A stretch of 64,000 bases of DNA from Pseudomonas aeruginosa PAO1. Its GTDB lineage: Bacteria; Pseudomonadota; Gammaproteobacteria; Pseudomonadales; Pseudomonadaceae. This document shows, piece after piece, positions 8,688-25,023 of this stretch. A program made the position numbers and the translations under genes. The stretch lies in assembly GCF_000006765.1 (NCBI RefSeq), contig NC_002516.2. One strand, given 5' to 3'. Below the pieces are notes generated by a model. The model was not told the DNA's origin. It was given only the letters and a program-made list of their open reading frames with translations, and ran no database searches. The first letter of the stretch is position 1, and each line of letters starts with the position of its first letter.

Positions 8688-9386
8688 TCAGGCCACTTCC
8701 ACCAGCAGCACTTCGCTGTCTTCCAGGGCGGTGACCTTCAGGGTCGGTTCGTCGCGTACCGCCAGGCCATCGCGGGCCTCGGCGCGCACGCCGTTGACCT
8801 CGATGCTGCCGGTGGCCGGCACCAGGTAGGCGCGGCGACCGTTTTCCAGGGCGTACTCGGCGCTCTGGCCGGCCTTCAGGGTCACCGCGGCGACCTCGGC
8901 GTCGGCGCGGATGTGCAGCGCTTCGCTGTCCTGCTCGTCGCCGCTGGCGAGAGTGACGAAACGACCGTCGCGCTCGGCCTTCGGGAACGGTTTGGAGCCC
9001 CAGCGCGGTTGGTCGCCGCGGCGGTCCGGGATGATCCAGATCTGGAAGATCCGGGTGGTCTCGGCTTCCAGGTTGTACTCCGAATGGACGATGCCGGTAC
9101 CGGCGCTCATCACCTGCACGTCACCGGCCTCGGTGCGGCCCTTGTTGCCCAGGCTGTCCTGGTGGGTGATCGCGCCTTCGCGGACATAGGTAATGATCTC
9201 CATGTCGCGGTGCGGGTGCGGCGGGAAGCCGCTGCCGGCGGCGATCTCGTCATCGTTCCAGACCCGCAGGCGGCCCCAGTCCTCGCGCTCCGGGTCATAG
9301 TAGTCGGCGAAGGAAAAATGATGACGCGCGTTCAGCCAGCCGTGGTTGGCATGGCCCAGACGGTCGAAGGGACGACGTTCGATCAT
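8688..9386 (-). CDS. Pirin/YhhW-like quercetinase-family protein, 232 aa
   Basis: HHFSFADYYDP, GFPPHPHRDMEIITYV, HQDSLG, MSAGTGIVHSE. Confidence 0.93.
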   Translation of the reverse strand: MIERRPFDRLGHANHGWLNARHHFSFADYYDPEREDWGRLRVWNDDEIAAGSGFPPHPHRDMEIITYVREGAITHQDSLGNKGRTEAGDVQVMSAGTGIVHSEYNLEAETTRIFQIWIIPDRRGDQPRWGSKPFPKAERDGRFVTLASGDEQDSEALHIRADAEVAAVTLKAGQSAEYALENGRRAYLVPATGSIEVNGVRAEARDGLAVRDEPTLKVTALEDSEVLLVEVA

Positions 9387-9503
9387 GATCGGATCTCCAT
9401 TGGGCCCGTCGCCGCTCGTTTGCGCGAGGGTGCGGGCGGTTGATGGGGTCATCATCCGTCAGATCATTGCGATAAAAAAGCGCGTATTTTTGGCTTTATC
9501 TAT

Positions 9504-10139
9504 CTAATTATTAGATTCGATAAGGGCACGAAGGAAGCGCGGGTCAGCCAGTACGGCGAGGTGCCCGCCCGGGTATTCCCGCACTCGCGCGTCCAGGCGG
9601 TGGGCGAAGGTACGTTGCAGCGGCGGCGGGCTGAGCCGGTCGGCGGCCGCCACAACGTAGGTGACCGGGCAGGCTGGACGAACCTGCCGCGGCGGGTCGA
9701 TCAGCAATTGCGCTGGCTCGCTGGCGCTGGTCGGCACCTCGGCGCCGAGCAGTTCGAGGAAGCCGGCGCGGTCTTCCAGGCGGACCCGCCCTCCGAGCGG
9801 GTCGAGGCGGCATAGCCCGAGGAGATTGTCCTGGCCGCTGTCCTGGTAGCTTTCCAGCGCGCCGCCGCCCTCGCTGACCAGCGCGCTGAACAGGTACAGG
9901 TGCGCGGCGCGCTCGCCCAGGCGGGCCGCCAGGCATTGCGCCAGGTAGCCGCCGAAGCTGTGGCCGCAGAGTATCACCCGCTCCTCGCCGGCCAGCGTGG
10001 CGGCGGCCTGGTCCAGCCAATGCGCCAGGTCGCATCCGGGCGCGTCGCGCAGATGGTCGCAGCTTCGCCAGCCGGCGCCTTCCACGGACCAGGCGGAGCG
10101 GCGCAGGAAAAATCCCGAGACCAGCAGCGCGCCGCTCAT
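9504..10139 (-). CDS. Alpha/beta hydrolase (esterase/thioesterase-like), last gene of the biosynthetic operon, 211 aa
   Basis: GHSFGG nucleophile elbow, ADRLSP, GGHLAVL. ATG overlaps the MFS stop (ATGA). Confidence 0.82.
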   Translation of the reverse strand: MSGALLVSGFFLRRSAWSVEGAGWRSCDHLRDAPGCDLAHWLDQAAATLAGEERVILCGHSFGGYLAQCLAARLGERAAHLYLFSALVSEGGGALESYQDSGQDNLLGLCRLDPLGGRVRLEDRAGFLELLGAEVPTSASEPAQLLIDPPRQVRPACPVTYVVAAADRLSPPPLQRTFAHRLDARVREYPGGHLAVLADPRFLRALIESNN

Positions 10140-11365
10140 CCGCCGGCCCGCTCGGCCTGGCGCAGGCCGACCGCGCCGACCTGCAGCAGCATGATCACCC
10201 CGCACAGCGCGGCCAGGCCGAGGTACAGCGCCTGGCTGCCGGCATGGTCGAGCATGATCCCGCCGTACAGCGGTGCCAGCGCGGTGCCGAGGCTGTAGAG
10301 ATTGGCCGCGCCGAAATAGCTGCCGCGCAAGTCGTCGGGGGTCAGTTGGTCGACCTCCACGCTGAAGGTCGGGAACACGATCAGTTCGCCGAGGCTGAGT
10401 ACCACCGTGGCCAGCGCCAGGCCGGCGAACAGGGTCACCGGGGTCCAGGCGAAGCCTAGCTGGGCCAGGAGCATGAGCAGCATGCCGAGCATCAGGCGGC
10501 CGCCGGTGCCGGTGTTTTCCAGCAGGCGGAGGAGGGGAAACTGGGCGACCACTATGGTCAGCGCGTTGATGGTCACCAGCAGGGCGATGCTGTTGACCAC
10601 GTCGGGCAGACCGCTGCGGGTGAGGTACTGCACGAGGGTCGAATCGAAGGTGGCGTAGATCAGCGCGGCCAGCATGTTGCACAGCAACAGCAGGGTGAAG
10701 GCGCGATGCCGGCCCATGCTCAGGCAGGCTTCGAGGAACCCCGTCGAGGATCGCGGGGCAAGGCTGCGCCGCTTAAGTTCGAGGTGGTGCAGCAGGCGCC
10801 AGAGCAGCAGGCCGTAGCAGAAGTAGACCAGCGCGGTGACCAGGAAGGTGCCGGCCTGGGCGGCGACGCCGAGAGTCAGGCCGATCAGCGGGCCGAGGGC
10901 GGCGCCGAGGTTGATCAGGAAGTACCGGCAGTAGAGCGCCAGTTCCCGCGAGCGGCGATCCTCGACGCGGTCGCCGATCAGCGCCTTGCAACTGGATTCG
11001 AGCAGGGCGCAGCCGATGCTCACCCCGGAGATCGCCAGTCCGTAGGACAGCGGCTGGCCGCTGAAGCCCAGCAACACGAAGGAAAGCCCGCTGAGGCTGG
11101 TGCCGAAGAAGATCAGGCGCTTGCGCCCGAAACGGTCCGACAGCCAGCCGGTGTAGATGCCGCTGAGCGCGCCGCAGACGGTCGCCAGCGCCAGCAGCAG
11201 GCCGATGGCGCTGGCGGACAGCCGGAACTCGCGCCACAGCAGCAATGCCAGGAACGGCCAGACCATGAAGTAGGCGCCGCGGGTCAGCAGCGTACCGACG
11301 AGCATCACGTGGATTTCCGTCGGCAGGGCGCGGAAGCGTTGCACGCTGAAGGTGTTGTCGCTCAC
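10136..11365 (-). CDS. MFS exporter, 409 aa
   Basis: About 12 hydrophobic segments; motif A GWLSDRFGRK. GTG start overlaps the upstream stop. Confidence 0.9.
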   Translation of the reverse strand: MSDNTFSVQRFRALPTEIHVMLVGTLLTRGAYFMVWPFLALLLWREFRLSASAIGLLLALATVCGALSGIYTGWLSDRFGRKRLIFFGTSLSGLSFVLLGFSGQPLSYGLAISGVSIGCALLESSCKALIGDRVEDRRSRELALYCRYFLINLGAALGPLIGLTLGVAAQAGTFLVTALVYFCYGLLLWRLLHHLELKRRSLAPRSSTGFLEACLSMGRHRAFTLLLLCNMLAALIYATFDSTLVQYLTRSGLPDVVNSIALLVTINALTIVVAQFPLLRLLENTGTGGRLMLGMLLMLLAQLGFAWTPVTLFAGLALATVVLSLGELIVFPTFSVEVDQLTPDDLRGSYFGAANLYSLGTALAPLYGGIMLDHAGSQALYLGLAALCGVIMLLQVGAVGLRQAERAGG

Positions 11366-12321
11366 GGGCGGGGCTCCTGGGCGAGGGGACGGATGCCGCC
11401 GCGCAGGCTGCCGGCGGCTACCTGGTGGAACAGCGGCAGGAAGCTTTCCGGCAGTTCGCGGGTGAACTCGCTGCTCAGCCAGCAGCGCAGCAGGCAGCGG
11501 CGCTGCCGCTCGTCGTCGCTGAACTCGGTGCGCGCGTGCAGGGTGGTGTGGTTGTTCACCAGCACCAGCATGCCCTTGCTGAAGTCCAGTTCGGCATAGC
11601 CGTCGGCGCGTTCGATCGCCTCGTCCAGGCCGTCGAGCATGCTTCGCACCTGCGGGGCGAGGCTTAGCCCGTGGCGCGTCACCGATTCGTTGAACTTGCG
11701 GATATAGCGCAAGACGAAGGTCCGCGGGGTTTCCGTGAGCAGCGGCACCAGCGCGTAGTCGGCGTCGCCTTCGTCGCGCAGGTCGTGGGGGATCGGCTGG
11801 CCGAGCAGGGGCAGCCAGGCCGGATTGGCGGCTTCCAGGGTGGCGAGGACGTCGGCCGAGGAACGGATGCGGAAGGCGCCGCCCCGGCGTGCCGGCGACC
11901 AGCAGGCGAGCACCGTGAGGTCGGCGCGATCGGAGTGGAAGGCCAATTCCTGGCTGGTCAGGTGGCCGCGCTGCGGCGCGTCGCGGGCGTCGCGCAGGCC
12001 GAGGTCGCGCACTTCCTTGAGGTACTCGCCGTTGCGGTTGATCGCCACGGTGCGTCCCAGCCATTGGCAGAATGCGCGGAACACCCGCTGGAATTCGTCC
12101 TCGGCGAGTCCGCGCAGCAGCGCGGAATCGTGCAGCAGCACGCCGCTTCCATGCTCCAGTTCGTGATGCAGGCGCTGGCGCAGGAGAGCCTCCGCGCTAT
12201 CCGCGGGACGCCGCTCCAGCAGGCGCGCGAACAGCGTTTCCAGGCCGGCGGCGAAAGCGGCCGAAGCGCAGAACACCGCGTTGCCCCGCCAGGGCGCGGG
12301 GCGACGATGGATGGTTGTCAT
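11362..12321 (-). CDS. TauD/clavaminate-synthase-like Fe(II)/2-oxoglutarate dioxygenase, 319 aa
   Basis: LAFHSDRADL (HxD), NNHTTLHAR, RCLLRCWL. ATGA overlap with the upstream gene. Confidence 0.85.
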   Translation of the reverse strand: MTTIHRRPAPWRGNAVFCASAAFAAGLETLFARLLERRPADSAEALLRQRLHHELEHGSGVLLHDSALLRGLAEDEFQRVFRAFCQWLGRTVAINRNGEYLKEVRDLGLRDARDAPQRGHLTSQELAFHSDRADLTVLACWSPARRGGAFRIRSSADVLATLEAANPAWLPLLGQPIPHDLRDEGDADYALVPLLTETPRTFVLRYIRKFNESVTRHGLSLAPQVRSMLDGLDEAIERADGYAELDFSKGMLVLVNNHTTLHARTEFSDDERQRRCLLRCWLSSEFTRELPESFLPLFHQVAAGSLRGGIRPLAQEPRP

Positions 12322-13916
12322 AGCGAGGCTCCGTATTCCTGCTGCCAGAGCGACAGGGTGGTGAGGGTGAACAACTGGTCGCCGGGCAGCGCCGCGACGC
12401 TCGGTGCATCCAGGCCTTCCAGGCCGAGGTCGTGGAGCGCCGGTAGGCGTTCGGCGAGGTGCCGGCGCATTTCCCCGAGGGCCTGCGGCCAACGTTCGAA
12501 CGGCAGGCGGAAATGCCGTTTCGGCTGCGCCTGCCAGCGTTTCTCGCGCTGCTCCAGGAGCGCCACCAGCGGTGCCTTGGCGGTGTCGCCGACGATCCGC
12601 TGGAGGCGCCCGGCGCGCTGCGCCAGGGCGCCATGCAGGTAGGGGGTGCGCGCTTCGATGGTGCGCGACATCAGCAGATGGTCGGCGCGGCGCAGCAGCG
12701 GCTCCAGCGAGTAGTGCAGGTCGAACTGGCCGATCGCCGCCTCGAGGCCCTGGCCGAGGGCCTCGTGGGCGAGTTCCTCGATCCGCTCGGCGACCCGTCG
12801 GCCCGCCGGTTCCGCCAGCAGCGCGGCCTTGCGCCGGTACTCGCCGAACCAGGCGGCGGCAAAGCGCCGCGGTTCCGGTGTGTCGCGCCGGCGCCAGAGT
12901 TCGAGATGGCGCGGGTAGCCCCAGAACAGTTCGTCGGCGCCTTCGCCGAGAAGCACGCAGTGATAGCCCTGCTCGCCGATACCGTCGGCCAGGCGCTGGT
13001 ACATCAGCAGGCTGGACATCCGTGTCGCCCCGCCGAAGTTGCCGACCGCGCGACGCAGCAGCGGCATGAAGGCTTCCTGGCGCAGCTCGAAGCGTTGCAG
13101 CCGAGGGTGTGGCAGCAGGCTTTCCTCGTCGCCTTCCAGGCACAGGTGAAAGCGTTGCAACTGCGGGTCCAGGTAGCTGCCGAGCAGGTTGGAATCGACC
13201 CCGCCGCTGACCAGCAGGGCGCAGGGGCGGAAGGTCTGGCGGCAGCGTTCGAGGGTTTCGCCGAGCTGCTCGTCGAGGCTGTCCACCTCGCTGGCCGGGG
13301 CGGTGGCCAGCCGCTGGCGCTGGCAGAGGCGCGGACGCTCCTGGGAGAGATCGAAGCGCAACACCTCGCCGGGCAGCAGCAGACGGACCTGCTGGAACAG
13401 GGTCTGGCCTTCCAGCGGCACGCCGGCGGCGACCACCTGGGCGATCGCCTCGGCGTCGGCGCGGGCGCCGCCGAGCAGGTGCAGCAGCGCCCGCGGCTCG
13501 GAGGCGAAGGCCAGCAGGCCGCGCTCGGGCTGGTAGCTGTAGTACAGCGGCTTGATGCCGAACTCGTCGCGCAGCAGGGTCAATTGCCGGGTCTGCGGGT
13601 CCCAGCTGGCGAGGGCGTACATGCCGTCCGGCAGTACCCCGCGCTGCAAGCCGTCGAGCAGCAGGCGGATCTCGCCATGGATTTCGCAGCCGGCCTGGTA
13701 GACCTCGCCGTTGTAGGCGACCCGCCGCTGACCCTCCTGCGGCGGCAGCGGTACCGCCGCGGCGCCGGACATCGGCAGGCGGGTCATGCCGATGGCGCCG
13801 TTCGGCAGGGCCGCGATGCCCTCGCCGAACGGGCCGCGATGGGCCAGCAGGCGTAGCGCTCCGGCGAAGCGCGAGACACTGAAACCGGTGCCGACGTAAC
13901 CGAGGATGCCGCACAT
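12318..13916 (-). CDS. Asparagine synthetase B-like amidotransferase / lactam-synthetase homologue, 532 aa
   Basis: N-terminal MCGILG (Ntn Cys), HRGP, RDEFGIKPLYY, PP-loop LVSGGVDSN, GEGADELFWGY. Confidence 0.88.
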   Translation of the reverse strand: MCGILGYVGTGFSVSRFAGALRLLAHRGPFGEGIAALPNGAIGMTRLPMSGAAAVPLPPQEGQRRVAYNGEVYQAGCEIHGEIRLLLDGLQRGVLPDGMYALASWDPQTRQLTLLRDEFGIKPLYYSYQPERGLLAFASEPRALLHLLGGARADAEAIAQVVAAGVPLEGQTLFQQVRLLLPGEVLRFDLSQERPRLCQRQRLATAPASEVDSLDEQLGETLERCRQTFRPCALLVSGGVDSNLLGSYLDPQLQRFHLCLEGDEESLLPHPRLQRFELRQEAFMPLLRRAVGNFGGATRMSSLLMYQRLADGIGEQGYHCVLLGEGADELFWGYPRHLELWRRRDTPEPRRFAAAWFGEYRRKAALLAEPAGRRVAERIEELAHEALGQGLEAAIGQFDLHYSLEPLLRRADHLLMSRTIEARTPYLHGALAQRAGRLQRIVGDTAKAPLVALLEQREKRWQAQPKRHFRLPFERWPQALGEMRRHLAERLPALHDLGLEGLDAPSVAALPGDQLFTLTTLSLWQQEYGASL

Positions 13917-15394
13917 CACGAGGCTTCCCGTTGCAGCAGGGCGGCGAGCGCACGGCGGTCGTGCTTGCCGGCGCCGTTCAGCGGCAGGGCCTGGTGCGAC
14001 AGCACCACGCGCTGTGGCGCGCGGAGGGTGCCGAGCTGCTGCTGGAGCCAGGGCAGGAAGGCGAACTCGACCTGCGGCGCGGTGTGGATCACGGCGACAT
14101 AGTCTTCGCCATAGAGCGGGCAGTCGACCTTCAGGCAGCAGACGTCGATCACCTCGTCCAGGCCGTTGAGCGCCCTTTCGCATTCATTCAGGTGGAACAG
14201 GTTGCCGCCCTTGTTGATGGTGCCGTCGCAACGGCCGAGGACGTGCACGCAGCGGTCCTCGTCGAAGTAGGCGAGGTCCTGGGTGTTCAGCCAGCCGTCC
14301 TCGAGCACCTGGGCGGTCAGGTCGGGGCGGTTGACGTAGCCGGAGAACAGGCTCGGCGTGCGCACCCACAGGCGCCCGCGTTCGCCGCTGCCCTCCAGCG
14401 GGCGGCCGTCGGGGTCGGTCAGCTTGAGTTCCAGGCCGACGGCAGGTCCCACCGAGTTGTCGAACGCATCGCCGCGACGCTTGCCGAAGAGGAAGGCGAA
14501 GCCGCACTCGCTGAGGCCGTAGATGTTCGCCAGCGCCGCGTAGTCGCGCTGGAAGGCCGCCTGCAGGTCGGCGTCCAGGCGCGCCGAGCCGGCGACGCAG
14601 AGCAGGCGCTGCAACGGCAAGCGGCGCGGCGGCGGGGAGCCTTCCTTGACCATGTGGTTGACCACCGGCGGCACCAGGTAGAGGAAACTGATGCCGAAGC
14701 GTTCCACGCATTCCCAGAAGCCTTCGCTGTCGGCCCAGCAGTGCAGCGGCAGGAGCACCGCGCTGCCGCCGTACAGCAGCGGGAAGAGGAAATTGATGCC
14801 GAGGATGCCCAGGCCGCTGATCCGGTAGAAGCAACCGGAGCGCGTGTGCTCGCCGATGCCCAGGCAGTCGCGGCCGATGCGGTAGGCATGGAGCATGGCC
14901 TGCTGGCTGAGTTCGATGCCTTTCGGCTGGCCGGTGGTGCCCGAGGTGAACAGGATCATATGGCTGTGCGCGGCGCGGTCGAGCCGGCGCGTCGCGCTGC
15001 GCTCGAAGTCCAGCGCCAGGCGCAGCCCGGCCAGCGCGCCCTCGAGCGGATGTTCGCTGGCCAGCGCTTCCAGGCGCATCTCGTCGACGATGGCCTGCTT
15101 CGCGGCCTCCCCCCACTCGGGATCGATCAGCACCAGATGCTTGCCCGCGCGCATGACCGCATAGATCAGGCAGAGGTTGCGGTAGCTGTTGTCGAGCAGC
15201 ACGCCGACACTGCGGCAGGCATGCGCGGCGATCTGCTCGGCGAGGGCATCGACCTGGCGGTCGGCGTCGCCCCAGGTGTATTCCAGCGGTCGCTCCGGCT
15301 CGCGGGCGTCGATCAGGAACGGCCGCCGCGGGTCGGCGCTGCCGAGATGGCGGAGGGTGCTGTCGAGCGATACGGGTACGGGGAGGCTGCTCAT
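13916..15394 (-). CDS. Stand-alone ANL-superfamily adenylating enzyme (acyl-CoA/amide ligase-like), 492 aa
   Basis: LFTSGTTGQPKG, YGLSECG, WLNTQDL, GAGKHDR; no carrier domain. Confidence 0.88.
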   Translation of the reverse strand: MSSLPVPVSLDSTLRHLGSADPRRPFLIDAREPERPLEYTWGDADRQVDALAEQIAAHACRSVGVLLDNSYRNLCLIYAVMRAGKHLVLIDPEWGEAAKQAIVDEMRLEALASEHPLEGALAGLRLALDFERSATRRLDRAAHSHMILFTSGTTGQPKGIELSQQAMLHAYRIGRDCLGIGEHTRSGCFYRISGLGILGINFLFPLLYGGSAVLLPLHCWADSEGFWECVERFGISFLYLVPPVVNHMVKEGSPPPRRLPLQRLLCVAGSARLDADLQAAFQRDYAALANIYGLSECGFAFLFGKRRGDAFDNSVGPAVGLELKLTDPDGRPLEGSGERGRLWVRTPSLFSGYVNRPDLTAQVLEDGWLNTQDLAYFDEDRCVHVLGRCDGTINKGGNLFHLNECERALNGLDEVIDVCCLKVDCPLYGEDYVAVIHTAPQVEFAFLPWLQQQLGTLRAPQRVVLSHQALPLNGAGKHDRRALAALLQREAS

Positions 15395-15403
15395 GCCGGC
15401 TCC

Positions 15404-16150
15404 TCAGCGATTCAGCGCGGTGAAGGCGTGGATGTCGAAGTTCACCGCCACCTGCGGCGCGCTCTCGATCTCGCGCACCGCGGCGATGAAGCGGTCGGCG
15501 TAGTCTTCGCCGCCTTCCTGCTCGATGTAGCGGGTCACGTAGCTGGTGGAGAGGAAGAACAGCGCGACCTCCTCCGGGCTGAGGAAGATGATGTTGGCGA
15601 ACACTTCGCGGCGGCAGTCGCGCAGGTGCGGGCAACTGCCCATGATCTCCAGGGTGTCGTCATAGCGGGTCAGGCGCGGATCACGGTGTTTGGCCCACTT
15701 GTTCACCAGTTCGTGCTCGATGAAGTCGCGCAGCGGCCCGTAGGCGATCGGGAAGTCGTACTTGTAGGCGCAGAACAGCCCGCCGGGGGTCAGCCAGTCG
15801 GCCATGCGCGTCAGCACCTGCTTGCGGTCCATCCAGTAGAAGGAGGTGGCGCTGGTGACCAGGTCGAAGCGGCGTTGCGGCGCGAAGGTTTCCGCCGGCG
15901 ACACGCTGAAGCGGATCTCCGGGTAGTTCTCGCGGGCCTTGGCGATCAGCGCCTCGCCCAGGTCGCTGCCTTCCACGTAGCGGAACCAGGGTTGCAGGCG
16001 GACGGTCGAGACGCCGTTGCCGCAGCCGATGTCCAGCGCCGCTTCGCGTGCCGGGGCGCGTTCGGCGAGGTTGCGGTAGAGCGAATCCGGATAGGCGATC
16101 TTGCCGCGGACCACGTTGTAGGCGTCTGCGTGCTTGTCGAACTGCTTCAT
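15404..16150 (-). CDS. Class I SAM-dependent methyltransferase (Tmt1/Tam-like small-molecule MTase), 248 aa
   Basis: ALDIGCGNG motif I, FDLVTSATSFYWMD, N-terminal Y..R...YP..LY pattern. Confidence 0.85.
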   Translation of the reverse strand: MKQFDKHADAYNVVRGKIAYPDSLYRNLAERAPAREAALDIGCGNGVSTVRLQPWFRYVEGSDLGEALIAKARENYPEIRFSVSPAETFAPQRRFDLVTSATSFYWMDRKQVLTRMADWLTPGGLFCAYKYDFPIAYGPLRDFIEHELVNKWAKHRDPRLTRYDDTLEIMGSCPHLRDCRREVFANIIFLSPEEVALFFLSTSYVTRYIEQEGGEDYADRFIAAVREIESAPQVAVNFDIHAFTALNR

Positions 16151-17514
16151 TGGGTAATCTCCAGTAGGCTCTCGTGGTAATCGCCCTTGTGGACGAAATT
16201 GATGTAGGTGCCGCTGCCGCCGAGGTAGCGGTAGCTGTGCTCGACGCCGGCGGGGATGAACACGCTGGCCGGGCTTTGCAAACGGCGCAGTTGGCCGCCG
16301 AGCAGGACTTCCACCTCCAGGCCGCGGTAGTCCTCGTCGCTGCCGAGGAACAGGAACACCGAGTCGCAGTTGTGCACGTGGCTGTCGACGTGGCCCGGCC
16401 CGCCGTCGCCGACGTCGTGGAACTGGCGGGCGATGAAATAGAACGGCGAGCCGTCGAGCAGGCGCCGGTCGAGCATGACGAAGCGCTTGCCGGGGCCGTG
16501 GCGGTGGTACTTCAGTTCGCTGGCGGATTTCTCGAAAGGCGTGAGGAACAGGGATTGGCGGTGCATCGGCGTGTAGCGTTGCAGCGAGACGCGGCCGTTG
16601 ATCAGTTCCGGATCGAAGGCGCTGTAGGCGTCCTGGTTTTCCTGCATGGCCAACTGGTGCAGGCGGGCGACATGGACGAAGGCGTTCTCGCCGACCACCG
16701 GGTGCATCGGCGAACGCTTGATCCGGCTGTGCGCCTCGACCAGCTCGGAGACCGCGAGGACGTTCTTCAGGTTGAAGCGGTCGGCGGCGAACTTGGTGTG
16801 CAGCAGGGTCAGCAACTGGAAGGTATCGGTGATCCCGGCGCGTTCGCCGATCCCGTTGCAGCTCGCCGAGTGCCACTGGACCCCGGCCTGGATCGCCGCC
16901 AGGGTGTTGCCCAGGGCCAGGCCGCGGTCGTTGTGCACGTGGTACTCGAAGACCACGTCGGGGAACTCGTGGCGCAGCAGCGAGAGCACGTCGAAGGTCT
17001 CGTCCGGCAGCAGGATGCCCACGCTGTCGGCGAAGCAGATGCGATCGGCGCCGGCGTCGCGCGCGGTGGCGATCATGCTGACCAGGTCGCTGACCGAGGT
17101 GCGCGCGGCGTCTTCCACCGTGGCCCGGACCCGCAGGCCGCGTTCGCGGGCGTAGCGGATCGCGTCGTGGAACAGTTCGAGCACCTCCTCGCGGTTCATG
17201 CCCTTGAACTTGGTTTCCAGCGAGATCGCGTTGATCGAGGCGAACAGCCCGACCCACTGCGCACCGGTTTCCAGCACCGCGTCGATATCCTCCCGGCGCG
17301 CCCGGGCGTGGGCCAGCACCGGCGTGGAAACCGCCGCCACCACGGCGCGTACCCGCTCGCGTTCGTCCGCGGAAATCCGCGGGTGGCCGCACTCGATCAT
17401 ATCCACCCCCAGCGCCGCGATTTCCCTCGCCAGCTGGACCGACTGCGCGCTGTCGAAGCTGCACTGGCGGGCCTGGCACCCCTCGCGCAGGGTGCAGTCG
17501 ATGACCCGGATCAT
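16147..17514 (-). CDS. IPMS/homocitrate-synthase-like DRE-TIM enzyme with C-terminal cupin domain, 455 aa
   Basis: DCTLREGCQ, EYHVHNDRGLA, GIGERAG; C-terminus HVDSHVHNCDS...VFIPAGVEH. Confidence 0.85.
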   Translation of the reverse strand: MIRVIDCTLREGCQARQCSFDSAQSVQLAREIAALGVDMIECGHPRISADERERVRAVVAAVSTPVLAHARARREDIDAVLETGAQWVGLFASINAISLETKFKGMNREEVLELFHDAIRYARERGLRVRATVEDAARTSVSDLVSMIATARDAGADRICFADSVGILLPDETFDVLSLLRHEFPDVVFEYHVHNDRGLALGNTLAAIQAGVQWHSASCNGIGERAGITDTFQLLTLLHTKFAADRFNLKNVLAVSELVEAHSRIKRSPMHPVVGENAFVHVARLHQLAMQENQDAYSAFDPELINGRVSLQRYTPMHRQSLFLTPFEKSASELKYHRHGPGKRFVMLDRRLLDGSPFYFIARQFHDVGDGGPGHVDSHVHNCDSVFLFLGSDEDYRGLEVEVLLGGQLRRLQSPASVFIPAGVEHSYRYLGGSGTYINFVHKGDYHESLLEITQ

Positions 17515-18389
17515 CGTCTCGCTCCCGCGTCCGAGGCCGACAGCGTCGCCAGCCGCGGCTCCCTGATGAAGTCGTGGATCTTCGGCGCATGACCGAACTG
17601 GCGGGAGAAACGGGCGAGGAAGGTGACCATCTTCAGCGAGTAGTCGCACAGCTGCGGAAGATAGTGGTCGAGGTTGTCCTCGGTGATTGCCTCGTCCGGG
17701 AACACGCTTTTCAGGTTGGAAGCGATCCAGGTTTTCATGCTGTCCTCTCGATTCAGTTGGTGGAATTCGTCGTCCTCGACGAAGACGATCGGCATGCCGA
17801 TGCGCAGCTGGCCGCTGCGGTTGTTGTGGCTGCCATGTGCGGTGCGGGCGGGCCAGACCAGGACGTCGCCGGCGTCCAGCTCGGCATCCACCAGTTGCTC
17901 GCGGGAAATGCCGTTGGCCTGTAGGTCGATGCACTTGAACATCGGGTAGGCGAGGTCGAATTCGTGAGGGAAGATCGTGCGGTCGTCGGGGTAATAGAAC
18001 ATCCCGCCGTTGTCGTTCCGCGATGGGGTCAGGGCGACCCAGAAGGTCTGCGCGCTTTCGTAGCGCTTCTCCCACAGCGCGATGTCCTGGTGCAGCGGGA
18101 TGTAGGACTCGTCGGCATGGCGCTTGATGAACGCCGCGTGGCGCAGCAGGCGCGGCTTGCGCAGATGGTCGCGGACCAGCGCGTCGAGCCCGGAACGGGC
18201 GAACCAGTCGTCCCAGAAGAGCGGATCGTGGCGGTGCAGGTTGCGCACCTTCTTCGCCTCGCGGCGCTCGTCGTCGGCGATGTCGAATTCCGGTTCCAGC
18301 GCCGGGTCCGGCCGCTGCGCCGCGGCGAGGATCCAGTCCAGCGCCTGTTGGCGCAATTGCGGGGATACCACCTGCCGATAGTGTTTCAT
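17511..18389 (-). CDS. PhyH-family Fe/2OG dioxygenase with C-terminal carrier-protein-like domain, 292 aa
   Basis: IPLHQD (HxD), FWVALT, TAHGSHNN; C-terminal ~75 aa with LCDYSLKMVTFLARF...IHDFIREPRLATLS. Confidence 0.8.
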   Translation of the reverse strand: MKHYRQVVSPQLRQQALDWILAAAQRPDPALEPEFDIADDERREAKKVRNLHRHDPLFWDDWFARSGLDALVRDHLRKPRLLRHAAFIKRHADESYIPLHQDIALWEKRYESAQTFWVALTPSRNDNGGMFYYPDDRTIFPHEFDLAYPMFKCIDLQANGISREQLVDAELDAGDVLVWPARTAHGSHNNRSGQLRIGMPIVFVEDDEFHQLNREDSMKTWIASNLKSVFPDEAITEDNLDHYLPQLCDYSLKMVTFLARFSRQFGHAPKIHDFIREPRLATLSASDAGARR

Positions 18390-19000
18390 TGGACGGACTC
18401 CTTGCTGACGGTGTGGACGATGAAATCGATCACCGCCGGGTCCTGCAGGGCCAGGTGGTGCGGACGCTCGCAGGGGAAGGTGTCGAGCCGCTCGATCAGG
18501 TCGCACCAGCGTTCGGCGGCCGGGTCGCGGCCGGCGTCGTCCCGGCAGCGCACCCAGCTGGCGCGGGCGAGGCGATGGCGGGGCTGCCAGCGGCCGAACA
18601 GCTCGACATTGCGCAGCAGGACCTCTTCGCGCAGTTCGCCAAGCTCGCTCATCAGGGCGATCCATTCGCGCATCTCGGCGCTCAGCCAGCGCTGGTATTG
18701 CTCGCTCGGCGGCATTCGCCGCAGGGCCGGCCAGGGCAGGTGGCTGTCGATCATCAGCAGGCGGCTGGCCGGCAACTGGCGGGCCATCTCGTAGCCGACC
18801 AGGCCGCCGAAGGAATAGCCGATCAGCCAGTCCGGTTCTTCCGCCAGGCCGTCGAGTACCTGGCTGGCGAGGGCTTCGATGCTGGCGTAGGCATCCAGCC
18901 GGTGGTAGTCGACCAGCCGGCAGTCCGTTGCGCCGAGGCGTGCCAGCAGCCCGCGGAAGCAGCTCGGGTGGCCGATGAAGTCAGGCAGCAGGATCAGCAT
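18386..19000 (-). CDS. Stand-alone thioesterase (NRPS TE-like), 204 aa
   Basis: WLIGYSFGGLVGYEMA, LMIDS, C-terminal HHLALQDP. Confidence 0.85.
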   Translation of the reverse strand: MLILLPDFIGHPSCFRGLLARLGATDCRLVDYHRLDAYASIEALASQVLDGLAEEPDWLIGYSFGGLVGYEMARQLPASRLLMIDSHLPWPALRRMPPSEQYQRWLSAEMREWIALMSELGELREEVLLRNVELFGRWQPRHRLARASWVRCRDDAGRDPAAERWCDLIERLDTFPCERPHHLALQDPAVIDFIVHTVSKESVQ

Positions 19001-20256
19001 GGGCGTAGCGCCTCGGCCATGGCCGCCGCCAGCGCCAGGGTCCGTTCGCGGCCGAAGCGGCTGGCCAGGCTGGCGTCCCAGCCGCCGTCGTCGCGCCGGA
19101 CCAGGGTCAGGGTCAGCGGCAGGCGGCTCTTCAGTGTCGGCCGGTGGATGAACCCGGCGCTGTGGAATGGCTGGTCGATGACATTGATCATCACCTGGGC
19201 GTCGGCATAGCGCAGCCCGGCCCGTTCGGCGATGGCCTCCGCCGGCAGCAGGCTGTGCTCGAAGGCCTCGAGCCTGTGTCGTTCGAAGGTGTCCTCGGCG
19301 GTCGCGGCGTCCAGCAACAGCGGCACCAGGTTCAGCCAGCAACCGGAAACCGCCGTGCCTCGGCGACTGCGCAGGCTGACCGGGGTCAGCGCCAGGACCT
19401 TGCCGGTGGCGCCCTGGCTGGCCAGGGCGAGAGCCAGGGCGCAGGCGAGCCGGGTCAGCAGGGCGGCTTCGCCGCCTCCTGGCGTGGCAGCCAAGCGGAA
19501 ATCCTCGCAATGGCTGGCGCGCTCCGCCCAGGGCAGGCTCGCCAGTTCACGGAACGCCTCGCCGCGCTCGCTCCAGTAGTCTTCCAGCCTGGTCCTGCGC
19601 TCGCGCAGCTGGCGCTCCAGGCGCCATTGCTGCTGGAGGAAGCCGAACTCGGGGGCCGCCGCTTCGGTCGTGGGGTCGGCGTTGAGCACGGCCAGGCGGG
19701 CCAGCAGCACGCTGGCGAAGTCGGCGTCGGCGACCAGGTGATGCAGCCAGACGCCCCAGCGCGCACGTCCTCCGCAGCGCCCGTGGAACAGTCGCAGCAG
19801 GCCGCGCTCGAACAGGGAATGCGGGCGTTGCAGCAGCGCTGCGATGAGCGCGTTTTCGTCGGCGAAGGGGCCGACTTCCAGCGCCGGGCTCTCCTCGGGC
19901 TGCCCGTGGACGACCAGTTCGAAACCTTCCGCGCCGCTGTCCACCTGGCTGTCGAGCAACGGGAACTCTTCGCGCAGGCGCCGTCCCAGGCGCGTCAGGT
20001 CGGATGCCGGCACCTCGGCCGGAGCCAGGTAGCAGAGGCCGAAGCGGGTCAGGTCGGCGCCGAGCAGCTCGCTGAAGACCATCCCGCAGGACCAGGGCGA
20101 CAGGTCGACGCGCAAGGACTGCGCGGCCTCATCCGGCATCGGTTGGTGCCGCAGGCGGTCGCGCTCGGAGGGGGACAGGCGGTGCCAATCGCCGACCACC
20201 ACCAGGTGCTCGCGGAACCAGTGGTAGCGCACCTCCGCGGAGAGACCGACGTTCAT
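18994..20256 (-). CDS. Stand-alone condensation-domain-like protein, 420 aa
   Basis: GVWLHHLVADA (HHxxxD motif), PVSLR...CWLNLVPL. ATG overlaps the NRPS stop. Confidence 0.78.
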   Translation of the reverse strand: MNVGLSAEVRYHWFREHLVVVGDWHRLSPSERDRLRHQPMPDEAAQSLRVDLSPWSCGMVFSELLGADLTRFGLCYLAPAEVPASDLTRLGRRLREEFPLLDSQVDSGAEGFELVVHGQPEESPALEVGPFADENALIAALLQRPHSLFERGLLRLFHGRCGGRARWGVWLHHLVADADFASVLLARLAVLNADPTTEAAAPEFGFLQQQWRLERQLRERRTRLEDYWSERGEAFRELASLPWAERASHCEDFRLAATPGGGEAALLTRLACALALALASQGATGKVLALTPVSLRSRRGTAVSGCWLNLVPLLLDAATAEDTFERHRLEAFEHSLLPAEAIAERAGLRYADAQVMINVIDQPFHSAGFIHRPTLKSRLPLTLTLVRRDDGGWDASLASRFGRERTLALAAAMAEALRPC

Positions 20257-22109
20257 GCCGCGCTCCTCGACAGCACCAGCGGCTGCTCCGGCGTCGCCGC
20301 CCGTTCCAGCAGACGCTCCGGCGCCAGGCCGTGGCTGCGCAGGAGACGGCTGAACTGGTCGAGGCGCGAGTTTGCCTGCAAGTCGGCGAGTCCCAGATTT
20401 GCTCCCGCACCCGCCGATTGACAGAGGGCGACCAGTTGCAGGGCGAGCAACGAGTTGCCGCCGCAGAGGAAGAAATCCTGGTCGGCGGCGCCGACCTCGC
20501 AACCCAGCAATTCGCTCCACAGCTGCGCGCAGCCGCGTTGGTCGGGATCGAGCGCGCTGGCGCAGCGCTCCAGCGGTTCTTCCAGGCGGCGCAGCAGGGC
20601 GGCGCGGTCCAGCTTGCCGTGTGCCGTCAAGGGCAAGGCCTCGACCCGGACGCAGGCATGCGGGCGCTGCCAGGTGGGCAGTTGGCGGAGCAGGGCCTGC
20701 GGGCTGGCGTCGGCTTTTCCCGTCCAGGCGCAGAGCAGTTGCTTGACGCCGTTGCGCTCGCGGACCAGCAGGGCGCAGTCGAGGATGCCCGGCTGGCGGC
20801 GGAAGCGCTGTTCCAGGGCGGGGAGGTCGAGGCGATAGCCGTTCAGCTTGACCTGGCCATCGCCGCGGCCGATGAAGCGCAGCCGGCCCTGCTCGTCGTA
20901 GCGAGCGCGGTCGCCGGTACGGTAGGCACGCAGGAGGCGGCCGCGATAGGGCAACTCGACGAAGCTGGCGCGGGTGCGCGCCGCATCGTTCCGATAACCC
21001 TGCGCCAGGCCGGCGCCGAAGGCGACGATCTCCCCGGCCCGGTCGGGCTCGGCGATCTCCTGTCCGTGCTCGTCGAGCAGGAGCACCGCGGTGCCGGCGA
21101 TGGCCTTGCCGATGGGGATGTCGTCTTCCTCGAGGTCGTCGTCGGTGACGACATGGCAGCAGGTGAAGGTGGTGTTCTCCGTCGGTCCGTAGCCATTCAC
21201 CAGGTGCAGTCGCGGATGCCGCAGCAGCGCCCGGCGCACGTGCGGCACCGAGAGGATGTCGCCGCCGGTGAGCAACTGGCGAAGGCCGCCGAGACAGTCC
21301 GGGTCGAGGTCCACCAGGGTGTTGAACAGCGAGGCGGTGAGCCAGGCGCTGTCGGCTCCGCGCTCTCCGATCAACTGGCGCAGCACGCCCGGGTCGAGGG
21401 GGCCGAGGTCGTTCAGCACGCAGCAGCCGCCGTTGAGCAGCGCACCCCAGATCTCCAGGGTCGCCGCATCGAAGGACAGCGGCGAGTTCACCAGGAAGCG
21501 CATCTGCGGAGCGAACGCGAGGAACGACTGGCCCAGGCACAGGCGGGTAATGCCGGCGTGGGTGCAGGCGATGGCTTTCGGGCGGCCGGTGGTGCCCGAG
21601 GAGAAGTTGATGTAGGCGATCTGGTCCGCCGCGAAGCATGGCCGGGCGACCGAGGCTGGAGCGGCAGGCAGGTGCCTGACCGGGACGCAGGGAAGACCGT
21701 TGGCGGGCGTCGGCGTGGTCGAGCAGTCGAGGATCAGGCGGCAGTCGACCTGCCGGCACAACTCTGCATTCCAGGCCGCCGGTTGTTTCAGGTCTATATA
21801 TAAGTAGTGATGGCCGGATAACAGTATGGCGAGCAGGCAGGTAATGCTTTCCCGAGAATATTCGCCGTACACTCCAAGACAAACTCCCGGCTGCGGATAA
21901 TGCTCGAGAAGATAGTCTGAAAGTTGTTCGGCGCTATCCAGGAGTTGCCGATAGTCGACACTTCCGAAACGGTCCCTGATGGCTTCGCGATGGGGATGAA
22001 GCGCTGCCATTTCGCTGAAGCGGGCCACCACCGTCGGGTGCGCGTACAGGTCGAGCAGGGAGTTCTGGGACATTCTGACAATCGCCTTTTTTCGAAAAAA
22101 TGAGTCCAT
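20253..22109 (-). CDS. NRPS adenylation-thiolation didomain (Val-type specificity code), 618 aa; PA1221 orthologue
   Basis: A3 FSSGTTGRPK, A4 SFDAATLEIW, A5 NGYGPTENTTF, A7 YRTGD, A10 HGKLDR; T motif FFLCGGNSLLA. Start MDSFF at 22109. Confidence 0.93.
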   Translation of the reverse strand: MDSFFRKKAIVRMSQNSLLDLYAHPTVVARFSEMAALHPHREAIRDRFGSVDYRQLLDSAEQLSDYLLEHYPQPGVCLGVYGEYSRESITCLLAILLSGHHYLYIDLKQPAAWNAELCRQVDCRLILDCSTTPTPANGLPCVPVRHLPAAPASVARPCFAADQIAYINFSSGTTGRPKAIACTHAGITRLCLGQSFLAFAPQMRFLVNSPLSFDAATLEIWGALLNGGCCVLNDLGPLDPGVLRQLIGERGADSAWLTASLFNTLVDLDPDCLGGLRQLLTGGDILSVPHVRRALLRHPRLHLVNGYGPTENTTFTCCHVVTDDDLEEDDIPIGKAIAGTAVLLLDEHGQEIAEPDRAGEIVAFGAGLAQGYRNDAARTRASFVELPYRGRLLRAYRTGDRARYDEQGRLRFIGRGDGQVKLNGYRLDLPALEQRFRRQPGILDCALLVRERNGVKQLLCAWTGKADASPQALLRQLPTWQRPHACVRVEALPLTAHGKLDRAALLRRLEEPLERCASALDPDQRGCAQLWSELLGCEVGAADQDFFLCGGNSLLALQLVALCQSAGAGANLGLADLQANSRLDQFSRLLRSHGLAPERLLERAATPEQPLVLSRSAA

Positions 22110-22421
22110 CTGCCGGCTTCTTCGGCTAAATGAAGGATTTTTGGTTTTTCGCGAAGACGGCGGCCGAGTCTTCCCGGGCTCTGCCAGTCGTCCGCCGCCC
22201 ACCGGCTCGCTCACGCGAGCGGCAAGCGTCGAGGCGCCTTGCCCGGAAAAACCGTTATGGAAATACGGAGTGCCGTCGACTCAAGGGCAGTCAACTGCTG
22301 CCATGCAGTCTTATCGTCAGGAAAGAGAGAAAAGCGATGAGAATGGATTCACGGTCACGCATTGCACTTCCACCTTGCGTTGGTTTTCCGAAGTGTTTCG
22401 CTGTGTGTGTTTTTATATGTT

Positions 22422-22479
22422 TCGTGGGTATTTAAAATAAGATACAAATTTCCCCTCACAACTATGAGAATTGGTAGTT
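22422..22479 (-). promoter_or_regulatory. las/rhl (lux-type) box with putative -10 driving the biosynthetic operon
   Basis: 22460-22479 reads AACTACCAATTCTCATAGTT on the minus strand (CT-N12-AG with 5-bp dyad arms). A TATTTT hexamer begins 20 nt downstream, fitting a box centred near -42. Confidence 0.75.
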
Positions 22480-22792
22480 GGCGAAAGGGCGCCATGAGGG
22501 GCGTCGAAGCGTGCCGGCTGATGGCTTTTTGCCGAGGCAGGCGGCCGCGGCTACGCCTGCCGGGGGTAGCACGGACAAGTGGTGTCGGGGGGCCTGGCCG
22601 CTGCGGCGAGGCGCGGAGGTCCGGCTGGCGCGGCGATCATCACAGAGGATTCTGCGGCGTCATTCATCGTTTGAATGGTTGCTGCCGCAAGCGCGCCCGG
22701 CGCCGTCGATGCTGGTCTGCGGTGTCGGGCGCTCGCTGGCGTTGCGTTGGCCAGCCGTCCCGGCCGGGTGCGTAGGCACCGGCCGGAGGTTT

Positions 22793-24939: not shown

Positions 24940-25023
24940 CCATATACCTGGAATTTCGGATATTCATTTCAACTATATCCGGCGATGGCCGATCCTGCGC
25001 CCACCTTTTGCCGGAGACCCGCC

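Follow-up and report, generated by a model that had tools for sequence, protein, structure and literature searches.

In the beta-lactone pathways of cystargolide and belactosin (Cys/Bel), CysG and BelI methylate the C1 carboxyl of a 3-alkylmalate, the ANL enzymes CysF and BelH form the lactone, and CysE and BelR remove the ester; amino acids are added by CysC/BelV and the ATP-grasp enzymes CysD/BelU (PMC11427300). CysA is a canonical LeuA-type isopropylmalate synthase (IPMS), 58% identical to the housekeeping enzyme (PMC10776993). A first-pass annotation of a 64,000-nucleotide stretch of the Pseudomonas aeruginosa PAO1 genome (contig NC_002516.2; hereafter the window) had suggested that three consecutive genes and a terminal esterase form the same enzyme set and may make an alkylmalate-derived beta-lactone joined to valine. 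These genes belong to the cluster PA1211-PA1221. Judged from the sequences, its resemblance to the Cys/Bel warhead pathway is one of logic, not of ancestry. We propose, with a confidence that falls a little short of even, that PA1217, PA1216 and PA1215 build and activate the acid in a thiotemplated pathway, in which a homocitrate-like acid would be methyl-masked, activated and coupled to valine.

Two further systems invite comparison. The HiVir/pantaphos cluster of Pantoea ananatis encodes the synthase HvrC, the dehydratase HvrDE, the O-methyltransferase HvrF, ATP-grasp ligases and a major facilitator superfamily (MFS) transporter. HvrF, which sits with a synthase resembling homocitrate synthase (HCS) and IPMS, is not required by the proposed pantaphos pathway; it is essential for toxin production (10.1101/2022.11.22.517531), and a protective role has been proposed for it (PMC7858074). 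HiVir combines an HCS/IPMS-family synthase taking an anionic 2-oxo acid with an O-methyltransferase of the Tam/Tmt1 type, as the window cluster probably does, but HiVir has no ANL enzyme, AsnB or non-ribosomal peptide synthetase (NRPS) parts, and the Pseudomonas version has no dehydratase and no phosphoenolpyruvate (PEP)-mutase signature. The logic of dapdiamide biosynthesis is also similar: an ANL enzyme activates a small acid with two or more carboxyls, an AsnB homologue amidates it, an Fe(II)/2-oxoglutarate (Fe/2OG) enzyme oxidises it, and it is joined to Val, Ile or Leu. The dapdiamide acid, however, is fumarate drawn from primary metabolism, and there is neither a dedicated synthase nor a methyltransferase/esterase pair.

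PA1211-PA1221 was still called an orphan cluster in 2026 (PMC13351317) and is one of the few P. aeruginosa NRPS clusters that remain without a product; it is quorum-regulated and virulence-associated. According to the account given in that paper, PA1221 activates L-valine (PMC13351317, citing Mitchell 2012), the cluster is induced by quorum sensing, RpoH/heat shock and kappa-opioid, a PA1216 mutant is attenuated in C. elegans, and the strongest induction within the cluster is that of PA1216 (summarised in PMC13351317). PA1216 was shown experimentally to bind S-adenosylmethionine (SAM) and S-adenosylhomocysteine (SAH), and the authors suggest that it N-methylates carrier-bound valine (PMC13351317). 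A phage protein binds PA1217, and when assayed as a 2-isopropylmalate synthase, PA1217 uses up acetyl-CoA yet, unlike LeuA, yields no product (preprint 10.1101/577908). SAM binding, acetyl-CoA consumption and valine activation, all from the literature, are the only activities established by experiment; the other steps we infer. Our literature search found neither a product nor a beta-lactone proposal for PA1211-PA1221.

Cys/Bel protein sequences were taken from supplement 3 of PMC11427300 and compared by BLASTP, motif alignment and hidden Markov models (HMMs) over 90 loci, with CysF, BelH and BhCysFE compared over ~400 residues. In BLASTP, PA1215 matches CysF with 40 bits and 26% identity, and CysF matches the unrelated adenylation (A) domain of PA1221 with 38 bits. 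The CysF/BelH motif CRHTLDVAHATDLH, with the proposed base H192, is missing in PA1215 and has GCFYRISGLGILG in its place; 8RA0 was not among the best 60 PDB matches of PA1215. The matches of PA1216 to CysG (37 bits) and BelI (27 bits) are confined to the SAM core, and neither of these two proteins was found among its PDB sequence matches or its Foldseek top 50. The BLASTP similarity of PA1211 to CysE/BelR is not significant (E > 1). No ANL-hydrolase fusion was detected in the PA1215 family and no CysF-type gene in any locus encoding an HMGL-cupin synthase of the PA1217 type. On BLASTP, motifs, HMMs and structure, specific homology with Cys/Bel was rejected for the four proteins. None was closer to its Cys/Bel counterpart than to generic family members, an outcome that the first-pass annotation had itself named as speaking against its proposal.

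What stands of that proposal is the set of enzyme classes. Like the window cluster, Cys/Bel clusters have an HMGL-family synthase, a carboxyl methyltransferase, an ANL enzyme, an alpha/beta-hydrolase and a valine partner, and a transient methyl ester that differentiates carboxyls is common to Cys/Bel and, probably, to the window cluster. Kinship to CysA/G/F/E or BelI/H/R in particular was not borne out for the HMGL/IPMS-family synthase, methyltransferase, ANL enzyme and hydrolase of the window. The synthase is HCS-like with a cupin in the window and LeuA-like in Cys/Bel, and the window ANL enzyme is probably a carrier loader. Coupling would use carrier proteins, a condensation (C) domain and a thioesterase in the window, whereas Cys/Bel use an amide-bond synthetase and an ATP-grasp enzyme. 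The window cluster adds an AsnB amidotransferase and two Fe/2OG oxygenases for which the beta-lactone scheme has no use. The suggestion of an alkylmalate-derived unit joined to Val survives in the cautious form of an alkylmalate-type acyl unit plus Val, which fits the conserved operon; the HCS-type pocket of the synthase does not agree with the stricter form. A beta-lactone could still arise, via PA1215 or the thioesterase.

PA1217, PA1216, PA1215 and the tail of PA1218

The main subjects of the comparison are located in the window as follows:
16147-17514, minus strand: PA1217, HMGL-like synthase of 455 aa (PF00682, 7e-60; HCS_D2)
16552-17514, minus strand: catalytic part of PA1217, DRE-TIM Claisen-condensing synthase (PF00682; HCS-type pocket)
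16150-16551, minus strand: C-terminal cupin module of PA1217 (AlphaFold2 (AF2) model, domain profile)
15404-16150, minus strand: PA1216, class I SAM methyltransferase of 248 aa (Pfam Methyltransf_25/11; motif I LDIGCGNG at 16013-16036)
13916-15394, minus strand: PA1215, ANL adenylate-forming enzyme of 492 aa (PF00501)
17511-18389, minus strand: PA1218, whole open reading frame (ORF), PhyH oxygenase with C-terminal tail (Pfam/NCBIfam)
17739-18389, minus strand: N-terminal part of PA1218, PhyH-family Fe(II)/2OG oxygenase (PF05721, 1e-36)
17514-17738, minus strand: C-terminal part of PA1218, putative small carrier-protein module (alignment with the stand-alone small proteins of loci L001-L004)

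The three consecutive genes that the first-pass annotation had placed at 13916-17514 were recovered exactly in this range, as ANL, methyltransferase and HMGL-like synthase genes, by frame-specific third-position GC (GC3) and Pfam/NCBIfam. The label "IPMS-like", in contrast, did not hold for PA1217. Its best PDB match is homocitrate synthase 6KTQ (202 bits), against 134 bits for the IPMS-family methylthioalkylmalate (MAM) synthase, 131 for citramalate synthase and 127 for fungal HCS. Alignments showed that PA1217 and both solved homocitrate synthases share the REG metal strand, the His of "AH.R" and the Arg and Thr/Ser of "VR.[T/S].ED"; the corresponding residues are RDG, Ile/Leu and Glu/Gln...Gly/Ser in IPMS-type enzymes, and Asn...Tyr in citramalate synthase. 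Across 56 diverse members of the family, the pocket residues of PA1217 (R10/E11, H69, R130, T132 and H192/H194) do not vary. When the numbering is shifted so that the first Arg falls on Arg43 of the Schizosaccharomyces pombe enzyme, a published contact to 2-oxoglutarate, H69, R130 and T132 correspond to its His103, Arg163 and Ser165. The AF2 model of PA1217 (predicted local distance difference test (pLDDT) 94) superposes best on 6KTQ in Foldseek, with a template-modelling (TM) score of 0.75 and a root-mean-square deviation of 1.4 A. PA1217 shows the TIM barrel, the Arg-Glu/HxH metal-substrate site and the subdomain II of HCS/IPMS DRE-TIM synthases. All NCBIfam equivalog cutoffs were missed (TIGR02146, 261 bits against 414; nifV, 216 against 463), and the pocket residues match HCS.

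Residues 322-455 of PA1217 form an all-beta module in place of the LeuA/HCS regulatory domain (AF2, pLDDT ~90), in which H375, H379, H381, D384, H426 and Y428 are invariant. The cupin was traced by a domain profile against PDB sequences; in the whole-model fold search the TIM barrel filled the top 50. Through its metal-binding strands the profile matches the small cupins 6J4B (1.3e-5) and 7EQK (1.8e-4), which may be 2-oxo-acid epimerases of the MarH/StnK3 type; the Pfam Cupin_2 match is weak. On account of the closest match, the pocket residues and the cupin that replaces the regulatory domain, we read PA1217 as an HCS-type enzyme fused to a metal cupin and not as an IPMS, and its sequence indicates that a distal anionic group is most likely present on the 2-oxo acid substrate. 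Compared with homocitrate synthase (alpha-aminoadipate lysine pathway, NifV) and FrbC-type enzymes, PA1217 has its catalytic fold, metal ligands and His/Arg/Thr pocket in common with both solved HCS types. Homocitrate and FR-900098 chemistry involves aconitase, and an aconitase is likewise found with actinobacterial PA1217 relatives. Unlike homocitrate synthase, PA1217 has the cupin, REG[CLIM]Q instead of REGEQ, and a place in a secondary-metabolite operon. A phosphonate origin, prompted by parallels with FrbJ, HvrF and FrbC, was also considered. A simple motif test found no PEP-mutase signature (EDKxxxxxNS) in the window or in any related locus, although a pepM gene could lie elsewhere, and this absence makes a phosphonate unlikely.

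The AF2 model of PA1216 (pLDDT 95.8) has as its Foldseek neighbours HvrF with SAH and pantaphos (9E72, TM 0.82) and the yeast trans-aconitate 3-methyltransferase Tmt1 (3G5T, 0.78), followed by the uncharacterised 4HG2, bacterial Tam (2P35, TM 0.61), and then the juvenile-hormone-acid methyltransferase JHAMT, BioC and LahSb. Sequence similarity to HvrF, Tmt1 and Tam is low (42, 24 and 31 bits), and the best NCBIfam matches, BioC and trans-aconitate methyltransferase, are both below cutoff. All characterised close structural neighbours esterify carboxyls, mostly of small polycarboxylates from synthase/aconitase-type chemistry, which supports carboxyl O-methylation and disfavours valine N-methylation. 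PA1216 is therefore likely to be a carboxyl O-methyltransferase of the Tam/Tmt1/HvrF structural type, and the Tmt1-like methyltransferase of the first-pass annotation gains support from these matches. Methyltransferases of the PA1216 type co-occur with a hydrolase in cluster types I, IV and V (listed below). A 264-aa actinobacterial protein was rejected as a PA1216 homologue (hhalign probability 0.8%); only a sub-threshold Methyltransf_25 match is left. Lone PA1216 homologues were seen outside any cluster in Kosakonia (L007), a Citrobacter-like metagenome contig (L008) and Piscirickettsia (L009), where they adjoin acetyltransferases, fimbrial genes or mobile elements; with 64-69% identity they are closer to PA1216 than some in-cluster orthologues.

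The first-pass annotation had pointed out that PA1215 has FYRISG (residues 189-194, window 14813-14830) where acyl-CoA ligases carry another motif. We confirmed this: GCFYR[IV]SGLGILG is invariant in all PA1215 orthologues (39-99% identity), and generic ANL enzymes have P.FH..G. The clade is sharply bounded, with orthologues scoring at least 373 bits down to 39% identity and the next ANL enzyme 145 bits. The ANL motifs A3 (TSGTTGxPKG), A5 (YGxTE-like), A7 Asp, A8 (GRxD..K.GG) and A10 Lys are present and conserved, including the catalytic A10 Lys477 (window 13964-13966) in GAGKHDR; the Gly of the A7 TGD varies within the clade and the Asp is kept. Once distant relatives are added to the alignment, the Arg of FYRISG shares a column with the A-domain "FD" Asp; at this position, ANL15-type enzymes of cluster types I, III and V have Arg or Lys, and those of type IV have Asp, Glu or His. 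For PA1215 this suggests a substrate that is anionic rather than amino, fatty or aryl. Activation of fatty or aryl acids had been named beforehand as an outcome that would speak against the first-pass proposal, and PA1215 has little look of a ligase for either. Its best PDB matches include oxalate-CoA and malonyl-CoA ligases, and generic ANL enzymes score 92-102 bits.

ANL15-type enzymes have a strong C-domain or KAS III-like partner in 22 of 25 loci, and carrier proteins in most; the three exceptions are Xenorhabdus/Serratia loci that are fragmented or have no NRPS sub-block. The ~27 loci without ANL15 gave no strong C or KAS III match and have ATP-grasp ligases instead. These carrier and transferase partners suggest thioester loading rather than lactonisation, and PA1215 is probably an acyl-carrier ligase rather than a lactone synthetase. 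In Tateyamaria omphalii (L068:16373-18622), a 749-aa protein consists of an ANL15-type enzyme fused to a C-terminal class I methyltransferase domain; a second, PA1216-like methyltransferase is encoded separately in this cluster, together with an esterase and a KAS III-like protein.

The second carrier became visible through comparison with other genera, in which a separate gene of 74-76 aa lies between PhyH and the synthase. The stand-alone protein belongs to PF00550 (30.5 bits in L003 and 21.2 bits in L001; gathering score 20.8), and its invariant Ser lies in xS[LM]K[LM]VTFL. It aligns with the C-terminal tail of PA1218, for which reason we suggest that P. aeruginosa has a second carrier fused to PA1218. 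PhyH and carrier are one ORF in the window and two genes 8-20 nt apart in Xenorhabdus, Burkholderia and two metagenome loci. PA1218 has an internal ATG (MKTWIAS, 17718-17738) at the very point where the separate carrier genes begin.

The operon and a proposed pathway

Across the window, G+C content is ~68%. Coding on the minus strand is unbroken from 9.5 to 22.1 kb, and GC3 frame changes delimit 11 genes, which equal PA1211-PA1221 one for one and agree with the gene functions listed in PMC13351317. Starts and stops of the 11 genes overlap or lie only a few bases apart; those of the ANL, methyltransferase and synthase genes overlap or are 10 nt apart, and these genes are translationally coupled. 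No promoter-like or terminator-like sites above chance were found inside the 9.5-22.1 kb block. Given the unbroken coding, the tight spacing and this lack of internal signals, the block looks like one operon. The remaining genes are:
20253-22073, minus strand: PA1221, Val-activating NRPS adenylation-thiolation (A-T) didomain (PF00501 and PF00550; T-domain Ser in GGNSL)
18994-20256, minus strand: PA1220, divergent stand-alone condensation domain (PF00668 weak, 14.8 bits; HHLVADA (HHxxxD) at 19723-19743)
18386-19000, minus strand: PA1219, thioesterase with conserved GYSFGG motif (PF00975)
12318-13916, minus strand: PA1214, AsnB-type glutamine-dependent amidotransferase with N-terminal MCGIL (PF00733 and GATase_7)
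11362-12321, minus strand: PA1213, TauD-family Fe(II)/2OG oxygenase (PF02668; best PDB match FrbJ 5EQN, 82 bits)
10136-11365, minus strand: PA1212, MFS transporter, start codon uncertain (ORF and GC3 frame; PF07690 in orthologues)
9504-10139, minus strand: PA1211, alpha/beta-hydrolase with GHSFGG, candidate methyl-ester esterase (Abhydrolase_6/1)

PA1221 is essentially identical to the PDB entries 4DG8/4DG9 named "PA1221" (1386 bits). The PF00668 match rises to 29.9 bits in the L002 orthologue of PA1220, and HHxxxD is kept in five orthologues. PA1214 has the hydroxyamidotransferase 7YLZ as its best PDB match, and its Cys2 is kept in orthologues; the HxD of the PA1218 oxygenase (LHQD) marks it as hydroxylase-type and not halogenase-type. 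The expected signs of thiotemplated assembly are present as carrier Ser sites, a C domain with HHxxxD (HHLVAD) and a thioesterase with GxSxG (GYSFGG). The terminal esterase of the first-pass annotation proved to be the alpha/beta-hydrolase PA1211 at the end of the operon, a position that this hydrolase occupies in all type I clusters. The extent of the 11-gene operon, the C-terminal cupin on the "IPMS-like" enzyme and the carrier module that ends the PhyH gene had been overlooked.

In the pathway that we propose, PA1217 would condense acetyl-CoA with a 2-oxo acid bearing a distal anionic group (2-oxoglutarate-like) to a homocitrate-type hydroxy-polycarboxylate, and the fused metal cupin would act on the 2-oxo acid or on the product. 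PA1216 would turn one carboxyl into a methyl ester, masking its charge and fixing which carboxyl reacts next; PA1215 would then adenylate another carboxyl and load it as a thioester on the carrier module of PA1218, and PA1214 would make a carboxamide from a further one. Hydroxylation would be due to PA1218 and PA1213. The C domain PA1220 would couple the acyl unit to Val-S-PA1221, after which PA1219 would release the product, PA1211 strip the methyl ester and PA1212 export it. An order of making, masking, amidating and loading is proposed because an HCS-type product has three carboxyls and the operon encodes exactly three enzymes that modify carboxyls (a methyltransferase, an ANL enzyme and an amidotransferase), besides an esterase. 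The simplest arrangement for a cluster with two adenylating enzymes, two carriers and a single competent C domain is one in which PA1221 charges its own T domain with valine and PA1215 charges the small carrier with the acid.

Several lines of evidence support this pathway. The genes are ordered and translationally coupled, the 11-gene block is conserved, and the acid sub-block moves as a unit in L002. The HCS pocket is invariant, PA1217 gave no product as a 2-isopropylmalate synthase, and an aconitase belongs to the actinobacterial core. The ANL motifs are intact, C or KAS III partners occur in 22 of the 25 ANL15 loci, and ATP-grasp ligases appear in clusters without ANL15. Several points weigh against it. 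The reading of the His/Arg/Thr pocket as a site for a distal carboxylate presumes that His103, Arg163 and Ser165 are the C5-carboxylate ligands in HCS; the check covered Arg43 and the numbering offset. PA1216 may act on a common metabolite, since homologues occur alone, and in a published screen by differential scanning fluorimetry organic acids gave it no significant stabilisation. The PF00550 score of the PA1218 tail is as low as 14.3 bits, and the motif around its Ser is not the canonical one; because the small carrier adjoins or is fused to PhyH, it could be loaded with valine by PA1221 instead. A Xenorhabdus locus (L011) keeps the acid sub-block without the NRPS sub-block, although its methyltransferase gene is split.

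What is new here is the HCS-type pocket and cupin of PA1217, the placement of PA1216 among polycarboxylate O-methyltransferases, the carrier module of PA1218, the PA1215 clade with its partners, and how large the wider cluster family is and which architectures it takes. A vague annotation as "IPMS, methyltransferase, adenylation enzyme" is thereby replaced by directly testable predictions. Confirmation of a transient methyl ester would reveal an independent second origin of the masking strategy of cystargolide and belactosin.

A pirin-family gene (8688-9455) and an MltA lytic transglycosylase gene (22793-23950) flank the operon; a LysR regulator lies at 24046-24963, and there is an AT-rich stretch upstream of PA1221 (22340-22480). 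Within this stretch, the sequence CTACCAATTCTCATAG (minus strand, ~22477-22462) matches the minimal CT-N12-AG las/rhl-box pattern, which is frequent by chance.

Alternative roles for PA1215 and PA1216

Other readings differ from the proposed pathway mainly in what PA1215 or PA1216 does. In the original model, PA1217 would make an alkylmalate, PA1216 would methylate it at C1, PA1215 would be a carrier-independent beta-lactone synthetase like CysF/BelH and PA1211 would de-esterify, so that the lactone acid joined to Val gives a protease/proteasome/ClpP inhibitor. The same four enzyme classes with conserved synteny, the structural type of PA1216 (carboxyl O-methyltransferases including Tmt1), the documented sequence of steps in Cys/Bel (PMC11427300) and the tie between methylation and adenylation in the L068 fusion are all consistent with it, and the hydroxy-polycarboxylate of PA1217, being a beta-hydroxy acid too, could still form a lactone. 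We nevertheless hold it improbable: PA1215 scores lower with CysF than with generic ANL enzymes and lacks the motif with H192, PA1216 aligns with CysG over the SAM core only, PA1211 and CysE/BelR are not significantly similar, HMGL-cupin loci have no CysF-type gene, the pocket of PA1217 is HCS-type, and a lactonising PA1215 would leave nothing to load the second carrier. Alternatively, PA1215 could be a free-acid ligase, either a CoA ligase or an amide-bond synthetase like DdaG/CysC, which joins the acid directly to an amine or CoA while the carrier serves PhyH only, for example in valine hydroxylation. The combination of ANL, AsnB and Fe/2OG enzymes recalls dapdiamide biosynthesis, the PDB matches of PA1215 include ligases of small dicarboxylates (oxalate and malonate), the carrier is fused to PhyH in the window and always adjacent to it in type I clusters, and L011 retains ANL15 without a carrier or C domain. 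L011 looks decayed, however, with its split methyltransferase gene; a competent C domain needs a thioester donor; and cluster types III-V, which have no A-T protein beside the carrier, yet keep ANL15 together with KAS III or C and often a carrier. We consider a free-acid ligase unlikely, and carrier loading by PA1215 remains our preferred reading.

As for PA1216, it might stand outside the pathway and, like Tam, give protection by esterifying a toxic by-product, for instance the trans-isomer of an unsaturated polycarboxylate, in the way proposed for HvrF (PMC7858074). HvrF and Tam are among its nearest structural relatives, and the solitary homologues with 64-69% identity outside clusters agree with such a role; this reading is unlikely, given that the gene lies between those for the synthase and the ANL enzyme, in translational coupling with them, and is the most strongly induced of the cluster, that an esterase co-occurs in three architectures, and that hvrF is essential for toxin production (10.1101/2022.11.22.517531). 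N-methylation of carrier-bound valine, the suggestion of the 2026 paper, rests on the proximity of PA1216 to a valine-activating NRPS and on the shift of its melting temperature (Tm) by protected Gly-Gly dipeptides in the published screen. In that screen the hydrophobic amino esters that mimic valine gave no Tm shift. The close characterised structural neighbours all O-methylate carboxyls of small acids, the gene keeps company with the synthase/ANL sub-block and not with the A-T sub-block, and homologues occur in clusters without an A domain, all of which makes valine N-methylation highly improbable.

The wider HMGL-cupin cluster family

All 11 genes of the block are found together again in Xenorhabdus, Serratia, Burkholderia and metagenomes, with ANL identities of 39-99%. 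Gene order is permuted in L002, where HMGL-methyltransferase-ANL-AsnB-TauD-hydrolase-MFS form one sub-block and A-T, C, thioesterase, PhyH and carrier another. We detected 480 HMGL-cupin relatives in data with one genome per species. Family HMMs over the 90 loci, with Pfam checks, gave the following cluster types:
Type I: the 11-gene block of the PA1211-PA1221 type
Type II (~16 Streptomyces/Kitasatospora species): TauD, CysE-like hydrolase, T-C, PhyH, HMGL-cupin, 264-aa protein, AsnB, A domain orthologous to PA1221, full-length aconitase, ATP-grasp ligases
Type III: TauD, HMGL-cupin, AsnB, distant ANL15-type enzyme, PhyH, DUF2332, C domain or KAS III-like protein
Type IV: carrier, KAS III-like protein, AsnB, ANL15-type enzyme, PhyH, Abhydrolase_2 esterase, TauD, MT16-like methyltransferase, HMGL-cupin
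Type V: acyl carrier protein, HMGL-cupin, AsnB, methyltransferase, ANL15-type enzyme, esterase, TauD (ANL-methyltransferase fusion in L068)

HMGL-cupin, AsnB, TauD and PhyH thus make up the deep core of the family. This core is widespread in Streptomyces, Kitasatospora, Xenorhabdus and others, so that one solved member would annotate hundreds of clusters. On a broader view, to which we assign a low probability, the family (480 relatives, at least five architectures) would make an amidated, hydroxylated polycarboxylate "warhead" acid, and P. aeruginosa would put this acid, possibly as a beta-lactone or other electrophile, on valine by a convergent cryptic-methyl-ester route, yielding a quorum-sensing-controlled, virulence-linked enzyme inhibitor. 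Our literature search found no known compound for the actinobacterial version.

The HMGL-cupin fusion enzyme also exists outside the cluster family: genes without AsnB, TauD, PhyH, ANL or methyltransferase partners within 10 kb occur in Trichodesmium, Oscillatoria, Thermoactinomyces and relatives (L049, L051-L052, L054-L058, L060, L062 and L064). Type III clusters (L021, L025, L027-L029, L061 and L069) carry DUF2332 (~355 aa) where other types carry the methyltransferase. Cluster genes are split into ORF fragments in Serratia rubidaea NCTC12971 (L018), Xenorhabdus bakwenae (L011) and Serratia silvae (L017), either by cluster decay or by assembly frameshifts; L011 and L017 lack the NRPS sub-block. 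In Kitasatospora sp. MAP5-34 (L005/L019:5235-7259), a 674-aa protein encoded within the actinobacterial form of the core fuses an alpha/beta-hydrolase to an ATP-grasp amino-acid ligase. Its gene adjoins that of a T-C protein, with a full-length aconitase further downstream, and its hydrolase part is 32-35% identical to BelR/CysE over ~125-157 aa.

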